NCBI GenBank assembly: GCA_904063045.1 | Contig: CAJFCJ010000003.1 | Span: 744,001 to 808,000, forward strand | Source: Dimorphilus gyrociliatus | Lineage: Eukaryota; Animalia; Annelida | Direction of reading: 5' to 3' | DNA: 64,000 nt | Shown here: positions 2,414 through 61,612 of the stretch, one piece after another | Layout of the letters: every line of letters starts with the position of its first letter | How positions within the stretch are numbered: position 1 is the stretch's first letter | Notes under the pieces: model-generated | Told to the model about the DNA's origin: nothing | The model's database searches: none | What the model saw: only the letters and a program-made list of their open reading frames with translations | Made by a program: the position numbers and the translations under genes

Positions 2414-5221
2414 ATGTCCAAAAAATTCAAAAGAAATAATTCAACAGGGAACGAAGATCAGGTGATTATAAGAATCGAAAATGACTTCGAAGAGAATGTT
2501 TCAACTGCCTATAAGACTTTCAACTTGTTATTATTCTCACCAAAGAGGCTATTGACCATATCAAGCAAGAAATTTATTCGCATAATTGTTCGCGATATAT
2601 GCCTTACAACTTTACAATTACCTTGTCTAATAACTGATTTCATATCATTATTAAAAAATGCAACTTGTGGAAAGAGGATTTGTTTCTCTTCAACATCAGC
2701 AAGGTCAAGGACCACTAGCCGTATCATACAACATCATCATTGTTGGGCTATAGAGAATTCAGTAATATGGGATCAAGATCAAGCTTGGAATGAAGAGATG
2801 TACTCGAATATAATATTAAAGATAATGAATACTGAAGATTTATCTTCTGAGATCAATAATATTATTCTCAATAATTCCATTCAAAGGATGAAAGTACTAA
2901 TAAGATTGAGCGAAAGATATAATTTCATAAAATCGTCGTTGAATGATAGGGTATATAAAAAGGAAATAGGAAAATAGAGATTGAAAGATAGCAGCTTATC
3001 CTTTTCCTCAAATAGTTTGTTATTCTGACAATAATTTATCAAAAATTCTCCTTCTATTTACCATTTTTATATATCCTATCAATATTAGTCTAATAATCCT
3101 TTGTTAACCGCTTTAAAGAATAATAAGCCGGGAATAGCTGGAAAACTTTTATCCATTTCGACAAAGGATACTTTACAAGATTGCGTAAATGATAATCAAT
3201 ATTGCAGTATGAATGCTATACACTTGTCAATAGTTCACTGCTTGCCAGAAATTCTTCAAAGAATTATGAACAAGTGTATGGAATTTGATATTTTAGACGA
3301 AATGTGCTCTGCACCAGCGAACGGAGAGGCACTTTCAAAGTGTTACGGTTTGTCAGCAATTCTACCTCTTCATCTAGCAACAGTCGTCGGTAACAATTGT
3401 GTTATAGATTGTCTTGTTTCTAATGGCTGCAAACTTGACAAACAAGACTCAATAGGCAATACAATAATCCATTCTCTAGTCTATTCAAGTAAAAAGCAAA
3501 GCGGACCGGCAATAGAGACCTTAAATTATATTTTAAATCTCTGTAGTCAACCTTCATATTTATCGATCTCTCACCAAAGAGTTAGTGAACTTGATTTATT
3601 TTCCTAGTGTAATCTGTATTTAAGTCTTATTATCTTTCCCTCGTAAATATTCACCTTTTCCTGGAAAAGAAAAACAATAAAATAAAACAAGTTCACTATT
3701 GGTTTACCAAATTAGGCAACCAAAAAGCATCTTATCAGATATTTATTAACGATAAAAAACTACTCTGGATTTGACCCTTTAAAGTTAGCGGCAGTTGAGG
3801 GTTGTGTCGATATGTTGAAAGCTCTACTAGAAATTGAGGGAACATATAGGATCTCTCAGACTCAATTAGGCCGGGTGAACGTCCTCGAATACGAAGTAAC
3901 TAACATAGAACCAATTTTATGTCGTATGCAAGCTGCTCCAAGCGTTTTAGAATTACTTGCTTATTCACCAAATGATGATAATATAAGAGATGCATTTTGT
4001 ATTCCTTTGGTTGAAAAGATTGTGGATCAAAAATGGTCTCACTATAGAACGTACTATTGGATATGGGCCATTGTGCACTGTTCCTATATGGCATGTATAT
4101 CCCTACTCTTTTTAAAGAACAAGAGATTTCCTTTTGAAAATTGTAAACCGAAGTAAATACTTGATAGAGATTAATTTTATAAAGAATAATTAAGTAATGA
4201 GCTATTAATTATTAAAACTCTAGCCAATTAGTGAAATATCAAGTATTGTACTAAGAACTCCTTACAAACAAGTGTACGATTATAAATTATGTTCGGCTGT
4301 TTTGAGTTTATGTATCATGCTTCTAACATACGGTTTAACTGGTTTTATTTGTACTCTTATTACTCAATGTTTCCGACAATCTAGGATAAGGAGGACACTG
4401 TCTGTTACTAGAATGGGCAAATATTATGTATTTTTAATAGGTAACAAGTTTAACAGAACTATTAAATAGGGATACATTTTTTAATGATTTCTTTTAAAGG
4501 TCATCCATCTTTAACCATTATTTGGTGGCTTTGTTGGGTTTTATGCGTAAAATCGGATATTTGCATGGTGATGGAGACCGTAATTCTCGTGACTGGCTGG
4601 TTATATGCAATAACGTTTAGTAAACTCTTCCAATTAACTGGTTTTTTCACTGTCATGTTTGCTAAACTTGTCAATAAAGATTTACCTAGGTTTTTACTTG
4701 TTTCATCTTTGGCTATTATTGGTTTTGGCACTGCTTTATTTGCCACTTACGCCCAGACTGTAGAAAAACCTCCTGAGGTATCCTCTCTTCCGGTGACCTA
4801 TATTAGTCTATTTAGAGTGTCTTTAGGTTTGACCGATTTACATTTCCTTCACGACGAAGAAATTAATTTGCATAGAATGTTGCTTTATATGACATTTTTA
4901 ATAACAAATAATGTTGTACTACTACATATGTTAATAGCAGCTTTAACGGACACTTATACTTCAATATCAAGACATGGGTCTTCAGTTTGGAGAAGATCCC
5001 AAGCGCAAGATATTCTTATGTTGGAAATGTCGCTCCCAAACTGGCTTCAGTTGAATTTTGTACATAAACATTATCTACCAGTAACCTTGGATGAATTAAT
5101 TATGGGAAATAAATTAGTTCAGAGGAAAACTTATGAATTCCAATTAATCGATTCTGAGCCTGCTCAGAGTCGTTGCAAGTTAAAAAGTTCAAATAAAATT
5201 TCACCTGTTGACAAACAATAA
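2414..5221 (+). CDS. Divergent TRPV-like cation channel, copy A (ankyrin repeats + 6TM). Alternative start at 2387
   Basis: Exons about 2414-2950, 3089-3580, 3716-4152, 4232-4440, 4500-5221. Ankyrin repeats (MNAIHLSIV, LPLHLATVVG, QDSIGNTIIHSLV), SVLELL, IV(D)QKW, S4-S5 linker FTVMFAKLVNKDLPRF, S6/TRP-box LLHMLIAALTDTY...W...A..ILMLE. Confidence 0.85.
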
Positions 5222-5585: not shown

Positions 5586-8267
5586 ATGGCATCTGTACAA
5601 TTTCAGCAAAAGACCTGTAATCATTGTAATGAACAAGTAATTATACGAATGGATTATGATAAAGATGAAGAATTTTTCAATAGAGATCTAGGATTACTTA
5701 ATGGAAGCTGCCCATCGTTAAAAAAGCTTAAACTCCGCAATATTTTCCTATTGTTGAGTGATTGTTGTTTAACGCTTTTACAGTTACCCTGTATAGTATT
5801 TGATTTAATTTCAATAGTAAGAAATCGGTTTATTAATAGGACAAGGCGACGAATGAAAATTGACTTATTAAATGATTCTGTCATTAAACACGTTGACTGC
5901 TGTAAAAAGGATTGCTCTAACATTTATCCGGAGGATATTGATTTCGATGTACACGTATATTCTCGGAAGATAGTTATGTCTTTATCTTCATACGATGACC
6001 TGATCTACGAGTTGAACTTGATTATTGACAAAAGTTTAACTCAGAGGATGAGATGCTTAGTTAATCTTACAGAAAGTTTTCCGGCAATGAATTACACACT
6101 AAACGATATGGTATTTAGACATTTTCCCTACTCTTTAATTATGTAAACCCTAATGTATAAACTATTCATATATGTGATGGAAAATCTCTTTATATCATGA
6201 AGAAACTGAAACCACTATTGACGGCCATCTATGATAATAAATTAGAAATAGCCGAACAATTACTATCAGTCGCAACAAAAGAAACTTTATTTGCAGTTAT
6301 CTCTGATAAAGATTATTCTGGAATGACAGCATTACATTTGGCTATAGTTAATTGCCAATATAATTTATTACAATCTCTACTAAATAAATGTCGTACATTC
6401 GGTATTCTTGATCAATTAGAGTCGTTAGAAGTAGGAGGAGAAGTTTTGGAAGAATGCTATGGACTATCAGGAATGACGCCTCTACAACTAGCATCCACAG
6501 TTGGTAATAGAGAAATTATAAACTGCCTTATTCAAAACCATTGTAAACTGGACAAACAAAATTCTAAAGGGAATACAATATTTCATTCTTTAGTATATGC
6601 CAGTAAGAAACATAGTAGTCAAGCCATAAAAACGCTTAAGTACATTCTAAGCAGCAGTAAAAAAACTTTTTGCAATTCTTCAAGCATTTCAGGGGTTTTA
6701 TAGAGTTTCTCGAATTATCTATTTTTTATAAATATACACTAAACGTATACAAAAAATTAGAAACGTAATGTTCATAAATAGAATAGTAAAAAGGATTATA
6801 GACCTATAGTTCTTCAAGAAACTCTATAAGATCAAGCCGAATCAAGTTGTTAGATATTTATTATCAATAAGAAATTCCTATGGTTTAGATCCTTTAAAAT
6901 TAGCGGCCGTCGAAGGGTGCATTGATATGTTAGAAGCCATCTTAGAACTTGATGGAGTTTATAGAGTATCTGAAACTCATTTGGGGCACGCAAAAATTTT
7001 GCTTTGTGATGTTAGTAATATCGAACCTATTTTATGCCGTTTAGACAAAATTCCTAGTGTCTTAGAACTTTTAGCTTTTACGACAGAAGATGAAAAGAGT
7101 ACGTCTGCCTTTAAAATACCTTTAATAACAAAGATAATTGAACAAAAATGGACAAATTATAAATCGTATTATTTCATTTGGGCAACAGTTCATTGTATTT
7201 ATATGTCACTATTAACTAGTCTGTCGCTTGGAGTAACACAAACTCACTATCGTACGACTCGAAGGGAGTGTTACAATGAATCAATCAAATCAGAGAAGCA
7301 TACTCTATTTAAAGATAAACTGGGCATTCCAGTTTTTATAATATGTTTTATACTACTTATCTATGGTATAACTGGTCTTTCCTGTCATATTAAAACTTAT
7401 ACTAAACGCTCCAAAAATTTTCGAACGACTCTATCTCTCGCTAAGCTTAGTGAATATTTCCTTTTCCTCATAGGTAATGTATTCTTAGGAAGACAAAGAA
7501 CCGTGTCATAAAGTTGTACTTTCTATTCAGGACACCCTTCTCTGACCATAACGTGGTTAATATTTTGGGAGTATTGTCTGCAAAAGAATATATCTTTAGT
7601 TATTGAAGTATTTGTTCTAGTCTCTGGATGGTTGTACATAATTACGTTTAGTAAATTATTTAGAGAAACTGGCTTCTTTTCTGTTATGTTTGCTAAAATA
7701 ATTATAAAAGATTTGCCAAGATTTTTATTGGTAGCCTCTCTAGCTGTTATTGGGTTTGGAACGTCTCTTTACGCCACGTATTCAATACATGAAGACAAAC
7801 CTGTGCAATTTGCAGATTTACCGACATCATTTATCAGTCTTTTTCGGCTTTCATTAAGCCTAATTGACTTGAATTTCTTACATGACAGGCAAAATTACAA
7901 ATTTTTGAGAGTTTTCATATATTTAACTTATCTAATAACAGCAAATGTTGTTCTCTTGCATATGCTGATAGCCGCATTAACGGATACATATTCAACTATA
8001 TCGAGGCAAGGTTCGTCGTTTTGGAGAAGATCTCAAGCTCGAGAGTTACTAATGCTTGAAAATTGTCTACCGTATTGGGTGCAAGCGAATAGTGTTCAAA
8101 AGAATTATTGCCGTGTATTACTTCAAGATATCAATTCGGAAAAGGAATTTGTGCAGAGAAATATACACTGTCAAAAGCTCATAGATCCAAAACCTTGCGG
8201 AGAAGGATGCGATGATTGCAAACATGATTCTGAAGCGTCACATTCATATTGTAGAAAGACAAGATAA
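5586..8267 (+). CDS. Divergent TRPV-like cation channel, copy B
   Basis: Same domain order and motifs as copy A (MTALHLAIV, TPLQLAS, SVLELL, IIEQKW, KDLPRF, LLHMLIAALTDTY). Shares three intron positions with the other copies. Confidence 0.85.
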
Positions 8268-8741
8268 ACTATCATTTATTTATTCAAGCAAGAATGAAAT
8301 ATTAGTATGCTACATAATTGAAAATATGAAGAATAGCCTTAGTCATCGAGTCATATGAGCATTACGAATAAATACTTAAAACTATATCTTAATTAATTCC
8401 CTTAATGACGTTACCTTATCATTAGACTCTATCTTATTCATAGCGAGAATAAACTAATTCGTTATATAAGTGTAAGAGTGTAATTTGACTTTTTCCTTTT
8501 TTAAACTAATAGATAAACATATATATTAATCTAAAATACATATATAATATAACATTTCAGACTTAATGTGTCAAACCTTATTTACAGTGCCCTTAGAAAT
8601 TCGAATAATACTAAGTAATTTTTCTTATCCAATTTATCTGTCCATTAACCAACGATACTTAGATAATAGATAAGAACACAATGAATAAAAGAGAAAGAGC
8701 TTAACTTCTTTTGGAAACGCTTTACTAACTTTCATAGAGTC

Positions 8742-11308
8742 ATGTCTTCGGAAAGATTCGAACAAATTAAATGCATGGAATGCCAACAGCAAATTATATT
8801 TAGACATGAAAACGATTTCGAAGAAGATGTTTCAAGAGCTTATTCCATTTCTAAAAGTATATTCTGTTCACCTAAAATACTTTTAAAATGCACTGGAAAC
8901 TTTTTCTTAATTTTATTAAAAGATATTTGGTTAACTATTTTACAAACTCCGTGTTTAATGTTGGATTTTTTTATGTCATTAGGGTCAACATGCTCTAATA
9001 AATGTTGCCAATGTAAAAAGAATAGAATTGAATCTTCACAGACATCTTATCATAAAAATTGCCTAATTTCTAATAGTTCAAAACTTTGGAATGAAAATGA
9101 TTTTCCTAATATTAACTCTTACGAAGAGAACCTAATTAATAACAAAGAAAATCCAGAATATTTACAGAATGAAATAAAGATTTTAATAAGAAAGTCGCTT
9201 GAGGATAGAGTAAAGGTATTTGTTAAACTAGCAAGGAAGTACGATCATTTTAACGCTGTTATTAACGATATGGTAAGTTTTTTTTATCTCTTCTCTTTAA
9301 AATATAATTTTGATAAATTAATGTCAAAGGTGGATAATCCATTTATACAAAGTCTAGAGAAGAATAAAGCCAATATCGCCGAATTATTATTAACAGTTTG
9401 TACAAAAGATATACTTATTGGCAGAGCCAAGAGCTTTAAATATAAAGGCATGAATGCCATACATTTAACTATTATTCATGGTTTATCTGACACTTTACAA
9501 AAGATAGTAAACAAGTGTAGATCATTTAACGTTTATGAGGAAATGTGCTCAATGAAAGCAAGGGGAGATATTTTAGGATTATGTTACGGACACACAATAA
9601 ATTTACCACTACATTTAGCAGTTGTTTCTGGAAATTTTTCAATAATTGATTGCCTAATTAGGAATGGATGCAAATTAGATCAGCAAGATGAATTTGGTAA
9701 TACGATATTCCATTCTCTTGTAATGGCAAGTAGAAATCAGAGTGGAACAGCGATTAGTACTTTAAAATTTATATTAAATTTATGTCATGAATATAAACAT
9801 ATATCTATTCAATGCGATAAGGTAAAACTCTATCATTTCTTAACAACTATGACCATTTTAATTATAATTTTTTTCTTTAATGTGCCTAAAGATTACACCT
9901 GAATTGGTACTTAGGCACCTATTAACCATACGTAATCAATTAGGTTTAGAGCCTTTGAAGCTTGCAGCTAAAGAAGGTTGTATTGATATTCTGGTTAATA
10001 TTCTAGAACTAGAAGGTGTTTATAAGATCTCTCATTCATCTGTTGGTCAATTATCAGTTTCTGAGTATGATTTAGCCGGTATCGAACCGATACTATGCCG
10101 TAGACAATCATCCCCGAGTGTACTTGAACTATTAGCTTATTCGTCACCGTACGAACAGAGTATTAAAAGCTTTCATATACCTTTAATCAAAAAGATGGTC
10201 GAGTTGAAATGGCAAGCATATAGACGATTCTATCTAATGTGGATTATTTTACACTTTTGTTACATGTTCAGTGTCACAATGTTGTCAATGGGGGTACACG
10301 CATCTCTACCTATTTATTGTTCAAATAATACAACAGTCGCTTCTATGTTCCGACTTCGAAAGATTGTTCTATATACAACTGTTAACACAAATTGTTTAGT
10401 TTTACTAACATATGGAATTACTGGTCTTATTTGCACCCTTCAAGTTCATCGAGGACGTGTGCCGGCAATAAGAAAGACCTTCTCAGTAACAAAAACTGGC
10501 AAATACTACGTCTTTTTAATAGGTAAATACAAATACGAATGTATCCTATGACCTCTGTAGAAAGGCAAACAAAATTTATTATGTAAAATTGACACGCTAA
10601 CTAAATTTACATCTCGTTTTAGGTCATCCCCTTGGTACTTTGTTTTGGTTTTGGATATCCCTGATTTGCGTAAAACAAAATTTTGCTCTAATTCTTGAAG
10701 TTGTCATTTTAGTAACCGGATGGCTTTATATAATCTCTTTTAGTAAGCTCTTTAAAATGACTGGTTTCTTTACCGTTATGTTTGCAAGGATTGTGAGTCA
10801 AGACCTTCCTAGATTTTTAATTGTCACTGTTGTTGCTATTATTGGATTTGGTTCTGCTTTATATGCTACATACGCTAGGTACGATGAAGAGGTAAAGCCG
10901 GAGAGCGTTCAAAATATCGGAATAACATACGTAAGTCTATTTAGGCTTGCACTAACTCTCTCTGACATGCAATTTATACACGATTCCCCTCTTGAATTGA
11001 AATTTACCAGATTGGCAATATATATCATGTATTTAATTACTTGTAATATAGTACTTTTGCACATGTTAATTGCCGCTTTAACCGATACCTATTCGACAAT
11101 ATCTAAGCACGGCTCCTCAGTATGGAGGAGATCCCAGGCAAGAGATATTCTAATGTTGGAAATATCTTTACCATGTTGGCTTCAAATACATTATATTCGT
11201 AAAAATTTTAAATTACTTGTTCAAGAAGAGTTGCATAAAGATGAATCGATAATTCAAAAGAAAACTTATACATGTCAACTAATTGACACGGAAAAGAAGG
11301 AAAACTAA
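8742..11308 (+). CDS. Divergent TRPV-like cation channel, copy C
   Basis: Same motifs (MNAIHLTII, LPLHLAVVSG, QQDEFGNTIFHSLV, SVLELL, QDLPRF, LLHMLIAALTDTY). An in-frame 57-nt intron lies at 9273-9329. Confidence 0.85.
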
Positions 11309-11508
11309 ATTGTTTGAAATCTAATTCTAATTTCTATTCATATTTAAAATGAAATGTAATTGTTGTCAATGAAAGGAAAGAAGAAAAAGAAGAGAGAATT
11401 GGTCTTAAAATGTTTTTTTTTTATTATTATAAATATAAGCCTTTAAAAAAATTCATTTACATCTACAATTTCATAATGGCCATATAGAGCATATAGAATT
11501 TTCATTTA

Positions 11509-12795
11509 TTAATAACTTTTCATTAAAGTTAAAATGTTAGCTACTATCTTTTCGTAAACAACTAACATAAAAGCAGCAGTTAGAACGGTTTGCGTGAGCT
11601 TTGCTTCAAATCCTAAGAAAAGACCTTGGAAATTTTTCTCTTTAATAATTGCCTTCAATATCGCAGACGGATTTGAGTTTTTAGCTCTACATCTGGTTTG
11701 TAAAATTTGTAGAGGATATGTTAGAAAAGTCGCTAAAAATTTTGAGATGGCACTCAAAATGAATATAGTGAATGATGATAATTCGTCATTATGAAATATT
11801 CTTGCGACGTAGCGTTTCAGTGACTCATAAAACATCCATTGAATAGCTGGATTAGACGCTAATAGCAAGGACACTGTAGTTCCACTCCACAACGCTTTTA
11901 TCCCTTCAGCAGTTATAATTTTGCTTGCGCAGTCTAAATAGACAAAAAGAGAACAAATAAGAGGAAAACAATAGATAGGAAAGTTATCTTGATAATTTTA
12001 CGTTATCTATTAGAATTTAATAAATACCTATTATACCAGTATATCTATTGGAATTGGACTGCAATTTTAATCTTGTATTAACCACCCAAAGCGGTGTTGA
12101 TAAAAGAACGTTAATAGCACCAGCAGTATATGCCGTCAGTAAATCCATTGTTGCTGTACGATTTTTCTGGCATACTTTTATACAATTGTATGCATAAAAA
12201 TAGACAAAGTTTGAAAAACCAAGGGCAGTTATTATGGAACTCAAACCGCGATAAATACCGTATCTATTATCAGCAATAACAACGAAAAGAATATGATTAC
12301 TCTTCGTGGAAAGTTATTGAATATATTATCATCTAGAAAAAAGGTTAAGATATAGAGCACTAGAAAAGGTTTTTAATGATCAAAAACTTCTTTTCTCTAT
12401 CATTTTCTTTCGCTCTATTTCTTTCTTTATAGCACCTAAAAATGTACTCACATTCCTTCTTTTTCAAATATTTCCCTTATTAATTGTAGAGAAAAGTTAT
12501 TTTTCGATTTTAAATCTCCAGCTAATTGACGATGTACAATGGATTTATTGAAATATTCCAATCCCACATGTATTATAATTACCTTGTAGTCTTGTTCTAG
12601 CTGAATCGAGAGGGTAGAAAGTTGAAATCGCTACGACACTTGCCTTAAAAAATATTTACATTCATAAAATACATTTCATATTCTTAAAAAATTTTATAAG
12701 TATCATGAAGTACTAACCGTCGAACCAGAGATAGCATGCACTAAATTCTTTACAGATAGTATTTCATGTAAAACGCTGTCAATTAGATGCTTCAT
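11509..12795 (-). CDS. SLC25A17: Peroxisomal solute carrier PMP34 (SLC25 family)
   Basis: LVHAISGS, SNFVYFY, TPLWVVNTRLKLQ, NPAIQWMFYESLK, TYPLQ and EAKLTQTVLTAAFMLVVYEKI match SLC25A17. Confidence 0.92.
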
Positions 12796-13192
12796 AATCG
12801 ATAATTAAATGACAAATGATAAATTTTCCAGAAACATTTCTATAACCATATAACCATGTTAGCAGACGACAAAAGAGAAACACTTTAATCTTTTTTTATT
12901 CTAATAATTAGCTGTATTATCTCATTAAGCGAAATTTAAAGAGTTTATGAAAATCGGAATACAAAATTAAAAATATATAAAATTGCTGTATACTATTTAC
13001 ATCGATTCTTATAATATCTGGCAAAATGTTTGAAAACTTTTTTTGAATGGTTATAAGCCTATAACAAATATGAATTCCGATGTATCATTTGTTAGCCCCT
13101 TTTATATTTTTGTTTGTTTTAATATGGAAATAAGAAAGTTAAGAAATTTATTAAGTAGAAAGAAAGAATGAAAGAAAGAAAGAAAAATAGGA

Positions 13193-13218
13193 AGAGAGAG
13201 AGAGAGAGAGAGAGAGAG
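13193..13218. repeat. (AG)13 microsatellite
   Basis: Directly visible dinucleotide run. Confidence 0.95.
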
Positions 13219-13606
13219 AAGGAAATAGAAAAGTAAATCCAAAATAATGAAAAGACACTTTATCTAAACAATATGTTGTTTAGTATAACATCATCATATT
13301 TTGTCTCCTTTTCCCTAATTTCTCTCTATCTTATTATACTTTATCTAACATTAAAAATAGTGAAATAATAACAAACAAAAGCGATTAAAAGATTAAGATA
13401 ATCTAAGAATAAAATATTAAATATACTAATAAAAAGAAAATATTCCTCATTATTCATATTTGTATGTATAATAATTATTGTTTATGTAAATAAAAAACAT
13501 AAAAAAATCTATAAATGTTTTGATTTTTTTTCAGGTAAAACGCCACCTGTGAATTTAATAGCTACAAGTTTCTCTAAAGATATAAATCAATATTCTTGTT
13601 ACAGAG

Positions 13607-14586
13607 ATGAATTGCTGCGAAAAATGTATGAATTTTTTTTCCTCCCTTGCAATAATAGGGGCATTAACTACTATTATAATATTTCTTGTTGGAGAATACC
13701 TGCATAAAACTATTATTGTTAAATTGGAGTTGGTTTATAATTTAAATACACTTATATTTATTATTGGTAAGTTTCAATTTCTCAATATTTTTCCTTCTTA
13801 GAGTGTCCTTTAAAAATTTCCTTCCTGTTTTCAATTTTCCAATCTTAGGAAGTCTTATGCTAGATACTGTCTATAATTCCCTAAAATCTCTTCTTACAGC
13901 TTATTATATATAAATATATATGGGCTGCATAGAAATTGTACTGAATAAATTATATATTCAGTTTATATATATTTATATAAATATATATATACAGTATACT
14001 GTTTATATTATATTAGAATATATAATGTAAAACATAGAAGAGATATTATATGTTAGCATAGCTTTTAAACTAGGGGGCGTCTAAAAGCTTTTACAAAGTA
14101 TTAATATTTAAAAAACATAGAGTCAGCATTTACATATTATTTAGAAAAATCATTTTTTAATCATATACTACAAAAGTTGTTGTTTAAAACATTTCAAATT
14201 CACATTTCACAATGTAGTAATACTGTAATAGAAGGTATGCTTATATAATGTACATAAAATCAATTGGGTAATTCTTAATTTAATAATTATTATTTAATAT
14301 TTTTAATGTAGCCACGAATGGATACCTTTTGTTTATTGGTATAGTAATGCTATTCTGTCGAACATGCAAGAACAAACGTGTTGATTCTACAAAACCAGAG
14401 AGTACTAGAACAGATGAAGCTGGAGCTTCAGATTTAGATCAGCATAGAAATTCAACTGGAGATAATAGATTGGCTCGAAATAGACCACCAGTTCCAACGG
14501 CACCTCCTACTTGCGCCCCGGGCACTGTATCTCAGAATTGCTACCCGAGAGGGCCATTACCTTCATATGATGAATGTCTTTATTAA
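13607..14586 (+). CDS. Small orphan membrane protein with two hydrophobic segments and a C-terminal LPSY motif (exons 13607-13767 and 14312-14586)
   Basis: A phase-1 donor (ATTG|gtaagt) joins acceptor tgtag|CCACG in frame. Product: MNCCEKC...LAIIGALTTIIIFLVG...LLFIGIVMLFCRTC...PPVPTAPP...PLPSYDECLY. Confidence 0.6.
14067..14083 (+). promoter_or_regulatory. CTCF-like motif (AAACTAGGGGGCGTCTA)
   Basis: Matches the CTCF core C.AG(A/G)(G/T)GGC(G/A). GC-rich island in an AT-rich intron. Confidence 0.5.
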
Positions 14587-53078: not shown

Positions 53079-54146
53079 GTTTTTCTTTCGATGAAAAAAA
53101 AAGGTTATACCAAATATCGTCTGCTAAGAGTTTTTTTTATTATTAAAAACTATAACTAGTTGAAGAGAAATGAACTACAGCGACCTCTACAATTCTACAT
53201 TTTAACCGGTCAAAATAATCAGATATTCTAATTGATCTCTATCGATAAATATATCAAAGGTCATAAAATATTTCAAGAACGTTTGTTTAAAACAAAAAAA
53301 GAAAAAAATTTATTAATATCTGAAAAATTCGAAGGAAAAGATATCAGTGTTTATTCTTTTTCTTTTAATATTATTATTTTTTGTTCATGTTTTGAAAGTT
53401 ACCTTTCAGTTTTTCTCAAGAAGAAACAATCACATTAAACACTACACGAAACCATTTACATATTTATATATATATATATGATTATTTTGTCAAAATCTTG
53501 AGTAGCATGCAAAAGAAACATAGATGAAAAAAAAAAGAAAAAAAAAATACAATGTAAGAGATGTAGCGTTATTTTTTTAATGATAGAGTAAATTTGGAGA
53601 TTTTAGGACAATAGTAAATCATGTCAACGATTGTAAATTGATGGTATGTAGATAAGTGTGGAGAGGATCATAACATTCCAGAATTGAGAAGGTAATAATG
53701 ACTTATTCTAGCCTTCAAATATTTCCTTTTTCTTGGATTGTTTTTTTTTCTTTTCTTTTTTTTTTACACTTAAATTTCGTTGGAAAAAAATGAATCACCA
53801 TACCTTTTTAGAAAAAGAAAGACAAAAGAAGTTGTAAATAAACTAAAGAGAAAAATGTTAATAATTTGAAGAAACAAGCACATATAATTGATGACAAAGT
53901 AACCCAAGCGTAATTGCGATATTTTTCGAAGTTTTAAATCAGACAACTTTCTCTCTCTTACATTCTTTTTCATACTTCATATACATTATATAGTTGAAAT
54001 AGTTGAAAACTATTTTAGAGCATCATGGAATATTTTTGTTTTTCTAATCATTAACCTTTACATTCATTATTGTTATATAAATTTGTTATGCTTTTTTTTT
54101 TATATTTTTCTTTTCTCTTTATCTCTATATCTCTTTTTGGTCAGAT

Positions 54147-57100
54147 TTAATATCTGTTACCAGGTCCACCAGAAAATTGACTTTGAGCAGCTTCGGAAAC
54201 AGCTGTAGCCGCTGTTTTCTACAAGAATACAAGAAAAGAAAATTTAATAAAAATATAACTTCAATAATCAAAAAAAAAAAAACTATTCAATAATGTTTGT
54301 AATGACTTACTTGAACTGTTTTATTACTCATTATATCCTTTGCAAATTCCTGTTGGGCTTTTTCGAAACTTGCTCCTGATCTTCTATAGATTCTGTGGAC
54401 CTATTTTAGATAGTTGAAAAAAGAAAACATTTAATATTAAATATACAATAAATATTTAATCGGAAAAAGACTGAAAAATGATTTAATAGAAATAATAGAA
54501 AAAGTTGATTATGAAAAGAAGAAAGCACCTTTGTTTTTATAAATATATATAATTATCAAAATTATTATTATTCGAAGAGTTTGAAACTGATGAAAAAAGT
54601 CAACTTATTCATTATTATTTGTTTTAAATCATTTAAATATTAATATTGATTTACTAAACTAAGCAATCAAGGTACAAGCAAGACAAAATTGAAAAGAAAA
54701 TAAGCATCAGTAGATATAAGCGAAAATTTTTGCATTACTCTCTCACCCTAATTAACAAGATTAACTGTCCTACTGCTATGATAATGAAAAGGATTCCAAT
54801 TATCAATCTAAATACGGCAACTGGCTTTCCTTTAGTATCATCCTGTCCAAATGACTTAATACCAACGTATACTCCGCTGTTATAAAATAATTATAACCTT
54901 AAGCAATTAACAGATTCATGCAAAATCAATTAATAAATTACTGAAATAAAATAAAATATATTTATGCCAACATTCCGAAACCTTTTCGCTTTTTTAAACT
55001 AGGAAAACTCAAGATGCGTATGGGGAATATAACAAAGAATTACAGACAGGACACTTATTAATTCGTAAGACTTTATATAAATATATATCGTGCTAAGAAA
55101 CCTTTATAAGTAGAGTTACACATCCAACGCAGAAAACGGCAAAAATCGTAGCCAGTAGAAACATGATGACTCCGACAATTTTTGCGGAAGTTGTTTTTTC
55201 AGTTATAACGCCTATGGCGGATAAAAATCCGCTATGTTTTTAAATTATAATATCGATTAATAATTTCGTTAAGACAGGAATGTTGATAAAATAAAATGAT
55301 TTTATATATATATATATTATATAAGTATTTAGGAACAAATGTAATATTTACCAAGTCCCATAGCCAGGTATTCCGACTGCTTGGAATATGCTGACTAAAA
55401 ATTGGAAAAAGAAGATAAAGAAGAATAAAAAGAAGTTAAAGGAAGAATCACTCCTGTTTAAACACATATAGTTATATGTTAGCCTTGGTAATTAGTAAGT
55501 AATCAAGGTATCCTTACCTAAATGCTTTGTATAACGGCCTAAACCAGCAAGCAAACGAACAAGGTGTAAATAGAATAAAATACAATATTGATAGACCAAA
55601 ACTTTGTCCATGACTCTCACCAGCTCCCAAAGCTGCCAAGGCTGCTAGAGTTCCTAACACATTAACTGCCAAACAGCAAGAATAAACGATCCACATAATG
55701 TAACCGATTCTAACAATTTTTTGAAATTCCATTGGGATTTCTACGGAAATATCTTGATAAAAGCATGGTTGTACACAGCATTTTTGCGGCAGAGGAGGAA
55801 AGTTATTAGCACGAACGCCAAATTGCTGATTTCTTAATTCTTGTTCTCTACGTTCAATTTCTGCAGCCTTTTTTTCTAATTCCTCTTGTCGTTTTTGTAA
55901 ATCGTCTGTAGCGACTTGGGCAGCTGATGGTGTATATGCTGGAGGTTCTTCCGTTGGTTTCATAATGGATGGTTGAGTTTGTGCGGGTTGAGGAGGTGGA
56001 ACATGATGAGTCTATAAAATGTCAAGAAAGAAAACAAATTATTTCGATAAATTTTCACAAATTTTCTATAGAACCATAACCAAAAAGCCTCAACCTCTTT
56101 CGTGTTAATAGAACAGAGACAAAGAAATATAAAAACCAACTATATATAGTCTATTAAAAACAGAGAAATCAATTAATAATTCTATTCTATCTTTATAAAT
56201 TTAAATATTTAAGAGATTGAAAAATGAACTGGAATAAAGATATATTGTTCTACTGTATGTAAATAAGCTGTAGGAATGACATATTCAATAGAGCAGTTGA
56301 ATACTGAAATGTATTCATCAGTAATAACATTTTTAGTATTTAATTACTGATTTACAAATTGTTCAAAAAGAAGAACTTATGTCGGATATAGAAATTTTAC
56401 TCTTCTACATAAATAAGTTTAATTTTGATTATTAGCTAACAAATTCAATTCATTAACCCTATAAATTCTATTTGAGCTATTGATTTCTCTACAGCAGTTT
56501 AAAGAATAATTCTGTAACATGTAATCCTTCTTATATATTAGTATCTATATTAATCTTCTATTTAAAGACTTTTCTTTTTAATTTTTGTTTAAAAAAATAA
56601 ATAAAAAGTAAGATAAAAAACTGGTTCACCAAACTAAAAATTTGTATAATTTTGTTTCTACTTAGATATCGTGTTCAGATTCTATTCAGTTTGAATAGGA
56701 TAGTTGTTACTATATATAAACTATTCAGTAACAACATTTATAAAAATACTATTCTCTATTGATGTATTGAATTATCGTTGTTTCTCTTTTACCACTAAAT
56801 CTCACATATTTAACTAAATAATAATTATACGAATTATAATAGCAATTTTTTAACACTTACTTCCTCCTAGTTTGGTTTAAATGAAAGTAAAAATGTAAAA
56901 TATTATTGAAAACACGTATATGTAATAATCTTCTGACTGTCACATGACTTAAATTACTCATTTGAAAAACCTAAAAATTCTTACCGATTGGGCAGCTGTA
57001 TTTTCGGAAAAGGGATTGAATTCATTTATAGTGGGTCTCGATTGACTTTTGGCTTGTTGAACAGCCGGATCCTAATTGATTAATACAATAAATTCAAAAA

Positions 57101-57186
57101 TACTAAAAATTTAATGCTTGTAAACATACCGCGAAAGGATTTGCTGCCTCTGGATCAGCAAATGGATTAGTGTCTGCGTCCGCCAT
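54147..57186 (-). CDS. SCAMP: Secretory carrier-associated membrane protein, with mutually exclusive exons 55102-55231 and 54747-54876
   Basis: N-terminal NPF repeats (TNPFAD, NPFA, FNPF), coiled coil, NNFPPLP, PCFYQDI, E-peptide [37 protein letters not shown]. Confidence 0.95.
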
Positions 57187-57306
57187 TCTATCCAATGTGA
57201 CTGAGAATTATAAGAGATATTTTAATTGTTAATTAATCTAACTAAGCGTATTTTCCAGAAAATTATTTATAAATAATTGTTCCAGGATGAGTCGATTTGG
57301 ATTTAG

Positions 57307-58234: not shown

Positions 58235-61200
58235 ATGAAAAATATGGCTATACCTCCAAACAGAACCGGAATGCCATATAACAACTTCAATGCTGAATTT
58301 CCTTTACAGCAAAACGGCCCGAAACCAACAATGATGCCAGCAAACTCGTTTCCTAATTTGCAACCGCCTAATATACCGCACAATGCATCTGCACCTTCAT
58401 TAGTTTCGTTGCAACAACCTGTAACCTCATATTACGCACCGCCAGCCGATACTAAGGGAATGGCTACAAACTATGGACCACCCATTGGTGGACTTTCGAA
58501 TATGCATATATCATCAACTTGTCCACCCGTATTGAATCCATCTTCAGGTAATTTTCTTCTATTCAATATAAAAAACACTAAGCGAGAACTTTGAAATGTT
58601 TTGTTTATAATCTTTGTACCAAGAACTGTTATCGATAAGAAAATTAGTTATTCAAACCATCAAACATTTAAATTCTCTTTGTTTACAGTAAACAATAGGC
58701 CGAGCACTGTACGACAACCTGGTGTTCCAGCGCCTCTGCCATCGAATTATCATTCATATCCGAATATTCCAATCATGCCTGTGCCTCAAGGACCTACAGG
58801 AATGCAAAATCCCGGACCGACCACATCATCTCGTCCCCCTGGTACTATAAATCAACCCAATATACCAGGACTTCCTCCAGGGTCTCTTCCTCCTCAGCCT
58901 ACAGGTCCATCTGTACCACCTTTGGGAGGTCTTAGTAGACCACCAGTTCCTTCTGGATCGAATGGTCTACCAGTCTCCTCCGGACCGCCAGGACCTATTA
59001 TGCCTCCAGGACCACCTGGACATATTGGGCATAATGGGCCCCCTATATCTATAGGACTCAATGGTCCTCCGGGATTGAATGGACCAAGCGGCCCTCCAGG
59101 ACCTTCAGGAATAAATGGACCGCCTGGGCCTAATGGACCTCCAGGACCTCCTGCACAATTCGGGTCCAATATTTCTTATTCTGGTGGAACTTTTCCTCCT
59201 AATCCGTCAGCACAGTTTAACGCTGCAAGTGCATGCCCTCCACCTGCAATGAGTTCAAATTCAACACCTACTTTCGATAGCAGCAGTCGACAAACTAGTA
59301 CTGGATTTGCTCCACCTCCGTTAACGAGTAGCACCTTAAATACTGGGTTCCCCCCGCCATTAAATACAAACGGTAGAAAGCAAGTATGGAATTTAATGCA
59401 AGAGCGTCAACTCATATCACCAGAAGGATTGGAAACACCCGAACCAACATTGCCCCATGACTGGAAACAAGTTAACTGTTCGCCTGAAATATTTCGTGCA
59501 ACTTTAAACGCAGTACCTGCCACTTCGAATTTATTGCAGAAAGCTCGTCTGCCTTTGGGTGTTCTTATTCATCCTTTCAAAGACCTTTCACAACTACCTG
59601 TTATTCAAAGTCCACAAATAGTGAGATGTCGAGCGTGTCGAACATATATTAATCCTTTTGTCACGTTTGTTGATAGTCGAAGATGGAAGTGTAACTTGTG
59701 CTTTCGGATTAACGATGTTCCTGAAGGTTTTTGTTATGATCCCGTTTCTAGAAGTCATGGTGATCCTCAAAAGAGACCAGAAATTCAGAGTGCAACAGTT
59801 GAATTTATAGCGCCTACTGAATATATGCTCCGTCCTCCCCAACCAGCGTGCTACGTATTTGTATTAGACGTTAGTTTCAATGCTGTTCGCACGGGATATT
59901 TACAGACATTCTGTTCTATGTTGCTCGAATGTTTAGATAATCTACCAGGGGATAAGCGAATGCAAATTGGTTTCTTAACTTTTGACCGAACCGTTCAATT
60001 TTATTCACTTGACGGAGCAGAACCGAAGATGATGATTGTAGGTGACATTGACGATATATTTTTACCTACACCTGAGTCTTTAATGGTTCACTTCCGTGAT
60101 GAAAATAAAAATGTTGTGAAAGAGTTATTGGAAAAGCTACCATCAATGTTTGAAGACAATCAAGAGACAGCCTCAGCTCTTGGCGCTGCTCTTCAAGCTG
60201 CACGTATGATGATAGCAACTACAGGAGGTAGAATAACTGTTGTTCAAACGATCTTACCATCTGTCGGTCCTGGAAGTTTAAAGTGTAGGGAAGATCCAAA
60301 TGACAGAGCCAGTAAAGAGGTGAAAAATTTGGGTCCTGCAACTGATTTTTACAAGTCTTTCGCATTACAATGTTCTGAGGTTCAGATAGCTATCGATTTA
60401 TTTGTACTCGCCTCCCAATACGTCGATTTAGCAACAATCAGCGGCATGGCCAAGTACTCTGGAGGATGTCTTCATTATTACCCAGGAGCTCATGCTCATA
60501 ACAATGTACCAGAATTGGAAAGGTTTGAAGAGGATGTAAGGAGATATTTAACTAGGAAAATTGGTTTTGAAGCTGTGATGAGACTACGGTGCACTAAAGG
60601 GTTGGCTATACATACCTTTCACGGAAACTTCTTTGTGAGGTCTACTGACTTGCTGAGTTTACCCAATGTTAACCCAGATGCTGGCTATGGAATGCAATTG
60701 GCAATAGAAGAAAATTTAAATGAAATGCAAACAGTTTCTTTTCAGGCCGCATTATTATATACTTCAAGCAGGGGAGAAAGAAGAATAAGAGTTCACACTC
60801 TTTGTCTACCAGTTGCAAACAGTATTCAAGAAGTCTTTGCAAATGCAGATCAAGAAGCAATTGTTGGTTTATTAGCTAAAATGGCAGTTGATAAATCGTT
60901 AACCTCTCTATCAGATGCGAGAGATGCTATGATAAATGCAGTTGTTGATATGTTGTCTAGTTATGCTAGTGCAGTAGCAGGAAGTAAAGTTCCTGGAACA
61001 CTTGCCTGCCCGGATTCACTCCGACTTATGCCCTTACTCGTATTAGGATTGATTAAATTTACGGCATTCAGAGTCGGCATTTCAACAAAATTAGATGAAC
61101 GATTTGCAGCTATGGAACTCTGCAAAACTGAACCCTTACAGTATCTAATTCTTCATATATATCCAAGATTTTATCCTGTTCATAATCTGGACACTAAACA

Positions 61201-61612
61201 ATTAATATCGGAGGGTGACGATGATATTCCGCAAGCACCTGTGATGCATCTATCAGCTGCTTACCTGGAAAGAACTGGAGCATACATATTAGATGCCGGC
61301 TCAAAAATGTACTTGTGGTTGGGTAGTGCCATAGATCAAAAATTTGTACAGCAAGTTTTTGGAGTTGAATCGTTCAATAGGGTACCCGATGGATTAACAA
61401 CTTTACCAGAAATTGAAACTGACTATTCAGAGTTATTAAGAAGTTTTGTAGACAATTTAACAAGCAGTAGACCAATGAGTGTTAGTTTACAGCTTGTGAA
61501 AGATGATGGAAAGGGTAGGGCTGCTTTTGCTCAACGTTTAGTTGAAGATCGAACAGAGGGGGCGCTAAGTTATTATGAATTTTTGCAGTACTTGCAGAAA
61601 GAAATCAAATAA
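58235..61612 (+). CDS. SEC24A/B: COPII coat subunit Sec24A/B (coding exons 58235-58547 and 58689-61612)
   Basis: Pro-rich N-terminus, [13 protein letters not shown], Zn finger [12 protein letters not shown]...WKCNLC, trunk [33 protein letters not shown], gelsolin-like C-terminal domain. Confidence 0.96.

Follow-up and report, generated by a model that had tools for sequence, protein, structure and literature searches.

The window, a stretch of 64,000 nucleotides from the annelid Dimorphilus gyrociliatus, carries on its minus strand, from about position 57250 to about position 54135, a gene for a SCAMP. SCAMPs are ubiquitous membrane proteins of post-Golgi and recycling vesicles, and their membrane core is poorly understood. 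A genome-wide search revealed this to be the single SCAMP locus in the whole 77.9-Mb genome. The exons (Table 1) were searched individually against databases, while the joined translation served only for local reading of the frame. Membership in the SCAMP family was indicated by a match to the Pfam family SCAMP (PF04144) above its cut-off, by three NPF motifs in exons 1 and 2 and by a conserved 11-residue peptide in exon 3. The latter exon, which terminates with the AG of a split arginine codon, matched PF04144 with E = 1e-33 and 117 bits (cut-off 27), and its product was identical at 60–63% of positions, to a roughly equal degree, to mollusc, brachiopod, nemertean and annelid proteins. Exon 4 matched positions 91–123 of the same profile (E = 5e-9, 36.9 bits, cut-off 27). 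A search of the PDB returned no solved structure matching SCAMP by sequence. The 5′ untranslated region (UTR) of exon 1 reaches at least to 57250, and the 3′ UTR of exon 7 extends below 54135.

Between exons 4 and 6 lie two alternative exons, 5A and 5B (hereafter A and B), which a first-pass annotation of this DNA had proposed to be mutually exclusive exons (MXEs). Both were confirmed as tandem minus-strand exons of 130 nt with AG/C-GGA acceptors and GT donors (the slash marks the splice site), and their translations corresponded exactly to the peptides quoted in that annotation. The borders read ...catag/CGGATTT...ATAAAG/gtttct for A and ...aacag/CGGAGTA...ATTAGG/gtgaga for B. The three introns around the pair measure 120, 225 and 346 nt, with the 225-nt intron separating A from B, and all splice sites are of the GT-AG type. 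Each exon contributes one nucleotide that completes the cysteine codon TG/C begun at the end of exon 4 (55352), followed by 43 codons, and both share the same phase. The frame logic that was said to enforce exclusivity was borne out by local translation: when A and B are both included, translation meets a stop 6 codons into B, and when both are skipped the frame is shifted. It had also been remarked that both exons are missing from the open reading frame track, which is true but trivial because neither begins with a start codon. Without gaps, A and B are identical at 12/43 residues, with G1, K17, F30, VG35-36 and LLI(K/R) in common, and both align to the exons that encode the fourth transmembrane segment (TM4) of other SCAMPs. 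The pair thus represents tandem homologous exons for the same structural element. The match of exon A to the Pfam SCAMP profile was weak and below threshold (positions 125–164). The proposal that the exons exchange TM3, loop and TM4 had to be narrowed accordingly: it holds for the TM3–TM4 loop and TM4, since exon 4 covers Pfam positions 91–123 and exon A about 125–164, but not for TM3, which is encoded by the constitutive exon 4.

The use of both exons was assessed in assembled contigs of sequencing runs. Run X3 stems from the organism itself; its library kind is unrecorded, but it behaves as a transcriptome, since its contigs carry every canonical CT..AC joint of the gene (GT-AG on the minus strand). 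All four predicted diagnostic joints were present in X3, namely 55352/55231 and 55102/54400 for A and 55352/54876 and 54747/54400 for B, each in high-depth contigs. One 185-nt contig runs from exon 6 through A into exon 4. Neither A nor B is idle, as both are joined to both neighbours. Exon B was also found in two metatranscriptomes containing material of relatives. In the marine metatranscriptome X2, where material is mostly <95% alike to the window, a 236-nt contig links exon 7, exon 6 and B. In the coral metatranscriptome X1, a contig runs on past exon 4 for 14 letters, which represent the start of B and depart from it only in the last two (B CGGAGTATACGTTG..., contig CGGAGTATACGTGG). The joint between exons 1 and 2 (57129/57070) was present in X1 and X3. 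Among the contigs listed, which as assemblies drop rare variants, no joint from A to B and none from exon 4 to exon 6 was found. Some X3 contigs also cover introns. One of 385 nt (54390–54774) represents RNA that is unspliced or retains an intron: it spans the whole intron between B and exon 6, with a depth about 4% that of the exon B contigs. Another contig, likewise of low depth, covers parts of intron 2 (56376–57013) with a 123-nt skip at 56511/56635.

For a comparison with a related species we used a 3.7-kb Logan genomic contig (L001), which encodes the protein most similar to exon 3 in the databases (93% identity). This contig keeps both exons, each of 130 nt, with AG/CGGA acceptors and AAG/gt or AGG/gt donors. 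In blastn, exon B stood out as an isolated alignable block between introns that can no longer be aligned. At the amino acid level A was 81% and B 67% identical. The ratio of nonsynonymous to synonymous substitution rates (dN/dS, Nei-Gojobori) amounted to 0.16 for A and 0.25 for B, compared with 0.01–0.03 for the constitutive exons 2–4. Judged by these ratios, A and B are both under purifying selection in the relative. Synonymous divergence was 0.56 in A and 0.77 in B, compared with about 1.8–2.2 (saturated) in the neighbouring constitutive exons. Lower dS is usual in alternative exons that carry splicing signals, and the low values, which derive from small counts, hint that splicing signals overlap the coding sequence of A and B. 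These data also bear on the idea that either A or B is splicing noise, or a pseudo-exon in decay, and plays no role in the protein. Pfam gave no match for exon B, and B evolves faster than A, which speaks in favour of the idea. However, A and B both occur in high-depth X3 contigs, B is used by two relatives sequenced in independent studies, and both exons have remained open with their splice sites, at dN/dS well below 1, next to exons with the high dS given above. The idea is thus already largely refuted, and we regard it as highly improbable.

The two predicted proteins differ markedly in the exchanged segment. Isoform A has an uninterrupted stretch of 25 uncharged residues. Two cysteines in it (Cys34 and Cys37) lie at distances of six and nine residues from the cytosolic end and are candidate S-acylation sites. 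Isoform B contains Arg23 and Gln37 within the helix stretch and no cysteine. In the loop and the N-terminal helix region (through Arg23), B has six charged residues and A has three. The relative keeps Cys34 and Cys37 of A as well as Lys7, Asp12/13, Lys15/17, Arg23 and Gln37 of B. The differences named in the first-pass annotation (loop charge, an arginine in the TM region and two cysteines) are present in the sequence. Differences of this kind commonly alter membrane-thickness preference, S-acylation and helix–helix contacts. The isoforms are therefore expected to differ in sorting or partners, and would most likely do so in membrane sorting or in intramembrane partners.

We conclude, with a probability of roughly 0.9, that the single SCAMP gene carries a genuine mutually exclusive pair, 5A and 5B, giving rise to two SCAMPs that differ in the luminal TM3–TM4 loop and the fourth TM helix and are otherwise identical. 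Each exon is joined in RNA to exons 4 and 6, each is under purifying selection in the relative, and the frame is broken when both or neither are included. RNA joints, frame check and the single locus all agree with the proposal that one gene yields two SCAMP proteins. Some points weigh against this conclusion. Besides the blank Pfam search with B, BLASTP did not align A with B, although short TM peptides are too weak for such tests. Since contigs cannot show absence, rare transcripts could contain both exons or neither, and contig depths cannot rank isoforms A and B. Lastly, the functional difference between the isoforms is a prediction from sequence.

Table 1. Exons of the SCAMP gene and proposed regulatory elements, in window coordinates
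Feature	Position	Strand	Description and basis
SCAMP exon 1, coding	57130..57186	-	ATG 57186-57184; 19 residues; first two NPF motifs; sequence and translation
SCAMP exon 2	56985..57071	-	29 codons; third NPF motif; sequence and transcript joints
Optional 6-nt microexon GAGGAA	56861..56866	-	Glu-Glu; between exons 2 and 3; flanks ctAG / GTAAGT
SCAMP exon 3	55518..56011	-	coiled-coil region, TM1, TM2, conserved 11-residue peptide; joints 56011/56985 and 55517/55452
SCAMP exon 4	55352..55453	-	constitutive; TM3; ends with TG of split Cys codon; transcript joints
Intron-4 island TTTATCAACATTCCT	55276..55290	-	identical in relative; proposed docking arm: core TCAACATTCC (55286-55277)
Alternative exon 5A	55102..55231	-	130 nt, 43 codons; X3 contig 14 spans exon 6, A and exon 4
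A–B intron island GGAATGTTGGCA	54965..54976	-	conserved; proposed selector arm: core GGAATGTTGG (54976-54967), able to pair with the docking arm
TGCATG (UGCAUG, Rbfox-type motif)	54917..54922	-	46 nt upstream of exon B acceptor
Alternative exon 5B	54747..54876	-	130 nt, 43 codons; transcript joints; only alignable block in its surroundings against the relative
SCAMP exon 6	54311..54400	-	30 residues, begins VHRIYR; sequence, transcript joints and relative
SCAMP exon 7, coding	54147..54218	-	stop TAA 54149-54147; joint 54218/54311

A further alternative element of the gene is the microexon GAGGAA, which is included between exons 2 and 3 in one X3 contig and omitted in another. The relative shows AG/GAGCAA/GTAAG at the homologous place (about position 1163 of L001). 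The upstream neighbour of SCAMP in the window is a Sec24-like gene on the plus strand (58235–61612). In contigs of Diadema (L004), Owenia (L006) and Lingula (L008), SCAMP is arranged head-to-head with a gene for AP-3 beta adaptin (Adaptin_N, AP3B1_C), and the recurrence in three species suggests conserved microsynteny.

As for the mechanism of choice, steric exclusion is unlikely because the A–B intron is 225 nt long. The three introns around the pair are about 44% identical to those of the relative outside a few islands. Two of these islands, one in intron 4 and one in the A–B intron, are complementary to each other. Their cores, designated docking arm and selector arm, pair as UCAACAUUCC with GGAAUGUUGG at -13.9 kcal/mol; in the relative the value is -14.6 kcal/mol, with one extra G-U pair. 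In either species, no other 10-bp helix between intron 4 and the A–B intron reached 4 G-C pairs, and this one was matched in 1/1000 and 0/1000 shuffles. For the window RNA, the helix appeared in the minimum free energy (MFE) fold as well as in the centroid fold. No conserved pairing was detected between the A–B intron and the intron between B and exon 6. The TGCATG close to exon B, another of the conserved islands, is the sole sense-strand copy in the 3.15-kb gene. The relative likewise has exactly one copy among the corresponding three introns, in the same intron at -30, where the chance expectation is about 0.03 per intron. Under the position rule established for Rbfox-type factors, a UGCAUG that follows A and shortly precedes B would favour A.

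From these elements a mechanism can be proposed. The conserved 10-bp helix would loop out exon A together with 45–60 nt before its acceptor and bring the donor of exon 4 towards B, so that B would be favoured; the helix might also hide the branch region of exon A. Conversely, UGCAUG upstream of B would favour A wherever an Rbfox-type factor is present, and nonsense-mediated decay would clear mis-spliced double or null forms. The helix and the single UGCAUG point to a regulated choice. In agreement with a docking-site/selector arrangement, the arms are complementary and conserved, and their pairing would place the distal exon near the upstream donor. Compensatory change, the other hallmark of such an arrangement, was not seen in the two species compared: the arms are invariant, and hence there is no covariation. 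This invariance would suit a different explanation, in which the islands are protein-binding or branch-site elements that are complementary by chance, and exclusivity results from splice-site competition and decay of frame-shifted products without any helix. The intron-4 island indeed contains UUUAU and UCAAC-like branch-site matches 45–60 nt upstream of exon A. Further observations weigh against the helix as well. The z-scores of the whole-region folds are ordinary (-0.86 and -0.41). In the MFE fold of the relative the helix is absent, and the selector is paired to a similar stretch within exon A. When the corresponding introns of Lingula and amphioxus were compared, they showed no helix of at least 10 bp with 4 or more G-C pairs. 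A search for Fox-1_C (PF12414) gave no match in the genome, but control genomes were also blank, which renders the result uninformative. An explanation by chance complementarity has to account, on the other hand, for the rarity of a 10-bp helix with 4 G-C pairs among the shuffles (at most 1/1000 in each species), for its presence in the MFE and centroid folds of the window RNA, and for the fact that the same helix arises in both species from the best-conserved islands of otherwise unalignable introns. We therefore consider an explanation without a helix doubtful, if still with an appreciable chance of being correct.

A survey of other animals, consisting of a profile search and a listing of the segment that follows the DSSFNF motif, after which six genomic loci were fetched, revealed that the exon slot is not peculiar to Dimorphilus. 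Pairs of RefSeq isoforms that differ only in the TM4 segment exist in oyster (Crassostrea gigas X1 vs X6-8), octopus (Octopus bimaculoides X2/X6), the snail Physella, amphioxus (Branchiostoma floridae X1/X4), the urchin Diadema antillarum (X1/X2) and the scorpion Centruroides vittatus (X1/X3). Octopus X2 and X6, for instance, both have 344 residues and differ only at residues 253–289. Two tandem exons were located in this slot in amphioxus, Diadema, Centruroides, the annelid Paralvinella and the brachiopod Lingula. All 10 exons of these five species have an AG/N-GG acceptor and an AAG/GT or AGG/GT donor, and their lengths of 118, 130, 136 or 142 nt are all 1 mod 3. The upstream copy is of a 'GI/GL' type and often longer, while the downstream copy is of a 'GW/GF' type. 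Slot, phase and tandem order are shared by the pair in the window. A literature search found no published description of SCAMP MXEs. The earlier statement that the arrangement was not known to be described is therefore supported as far as papers are concerned; the same slot is nevertheless widely represented in machine-annotated RefSeq isoforms, and the pair is not unique. It is a real further case of a widespread array for which no published description was found.

Several additional observations concern the SCAMP genes of these animals. Paralvinella palmiformis has an intact 130-nt upstream-type TM4 exon with AG/GT sites (L007:15967-16096, GIINSLDMIAYGGAGPIAAGLIMLIIGIMFALMALTVMIVLIK), which is missing from the protein model P0190. 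In Owenia fusiformis, only one TM4 exon was found on L006. On the same contig, the exon for residues ~155–220 (TM1–TM2) is present in seven tandem copies at 6496–14450, which are 52–100% identical to the annotated copy, and the exon for residues 117–159 is present in two copies at 4147–4628. This has the appearance of a large cluster of MXEs elsewhere in the SCAMP gene. Oyster isoforms differ also in the TM3 exon, which encodes either SDSSFSFFVFFFNFFFQAICCIVMLIGITDF or a 31-residue alternative (P0121/P0123 vs P0124 in Crassostrea, P0127 vs P0128 in Ostrea) and represents a second MXE pair. The gene models of Pinctada (P0173) and Nucella (P0187) include the two copies of an alternative exon one after the other, apparently through mis-annotation. 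A B-like segment (GVWFMIRSFQGD...) in the metagenome protein P0039, encoded on a 2.6-kb JGI contig, was discarded, because the gene is intronless and thus uninformative on splicing.

To assign A and B to the upstream or downstream type, we compared them with hidden Markov models (HMMs) of both types, which classified 49/50 known exons correctly in leave-one-out tests, and with phylogenetic trees. A first tree gave no resolution. When annelid-like sequences were added, a maximum-likelihood tree based on 43 columns placed A within a clade of upstream-type exons (Par_UP, x167, x258) with support of 80/91 and B outside this clade, among downstream-like exons. The nearest rows to A in the tree were x167 and x222. 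Moreover, A shares SAKIVG.IM with the upstream-type x258, resembles upstream-type exons of 43 residues, and has the same length of 130 nt as the upstream exon of Paralvinella. The pair may hence have descended from an old bilaterian array, with A being of the upstream and B of the downstream type. Other results run counter to this assignment and would fit a lineage-specific duplication within dinophilid annelids, in which a downstream-type exon was copied after loss of the ancestral upstream copy; the pair would still be a real case of MXEs. Thus, both exons scored higher with the downstream than with the upstream HMM (A 18.1 vs 8.3 bits, B 27.5 vs 11.4 bits), all values being low. The approximately unbiased (AU) test did not reject A and B as one clade (p = 0.24, 43 columns). 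Both exons have exactly 130 nt, while ancient pairs are usually of unequal length, and in tblastn B cross-matched exon A of the relative, if weakly (E = 2e-4). We distrust the HMM assignment, however, because the upstream profile is mostly molluscan. With 12/43 identical residues, A and B also resemble each other no more than they resemble exons of other phyla, and the free tree separates them, with the features that A shares with x258 and Paralvinella pointing in the same direction. A lineage-specific duplication is thus unlikely in our estimation, but its probability is far from negligible.

A wider reading, to which we give slightly less than even odds, regards the TM4 pair as an ancestral feature of bilaterian SCAMP, present in annelids, molluscs, brachiopods, scorpions, sea urchins and amphioxus, and lost in vertebrates, which would have kept the downstream type and multiplied the gene. 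Invertebrate SCAMP would then be an MXE gene with several clusters (seven copies for TM1–TM2 in Owenia, two for TM3 in oysters, two for TM4 widely), and in dinophilids the choice would be made by a docking/selector helix together with UGCAUG.

A selected natural switch that exchanges only TM4 and the luminal loop marks TM4 as a functional determinant, be it for sorting, for lipid or partner contacts, or possibly through S-acylation, and A and B offer a ready-made pair of isoforms for comparison. More broadly, this is a further instance of animals that arrive at the same diversity through duplicated exons in one group and through duplicated genes in another. The array is shared by several bilaterian phyla, and vertebrates lack it. 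What is new here are the conserved complementary islands, whose pairing would loop out exon A, and the single conserved UGCAUG upstream of B. With its short introns and complementary islands, the compact gene provides a tractable system for the control of mutually exclusive splicing by RNA structure outside insects and mammals.

Competing RNA structures formed by docking sites and selectors are known from mutually exclusive splicing in Dscam1, 14-3-3 zeta and human ATE1 (PMC6071210, PMC7797038, PMC8791459). As in these systems, a conserved intronic site upstream of the array is complementary to a site just upstream of the distal exon, and pairing would loop out the proximal exon. In contrast to their sets of competing selectors, the window has one selector and a short helix of 10–11 bp, known from the sequences of two species. 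With Rbfox-regulated exons the pair shares a single conserved UGCAUG between the exons, downstream of A and 30–46 nt upstream of B; in the window it is a candidate site, recognized by its motif. The closest counterparts are the TM4 pairs of other bilaterian SCAMPs, which occupy the same slot between a TM3 exon ending in G.[CV] and the VHRIYR exon, have the same phase (1 nt plus n codons) and lengths of 1 mod 3, and swap the same segment. These pairs, whose isoforms are pipeline predictions, are usually unequal (118 vs 130–142 nt) and of recognizable GI/GL and GW types, whereas both exons in the window have 130 nt. Finally, the first-pass annotation had drawn a parallel to the multi-gene SCAMP family of vertebrates. 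SCAMP1-5 are likewise four-pass PF04144 proteins that differ in TM4 and loop, among other things, and the parallel is valid as an analogy. It does not extend to the exons themselves: all vertebrate paralogues listed carry the 39-residue downstream 'GW' type and hence do not mirror the split between A and B. Vertebrate diversity stems from separate genes, whereas in the window one gene provides two SCAMPs by splicing.

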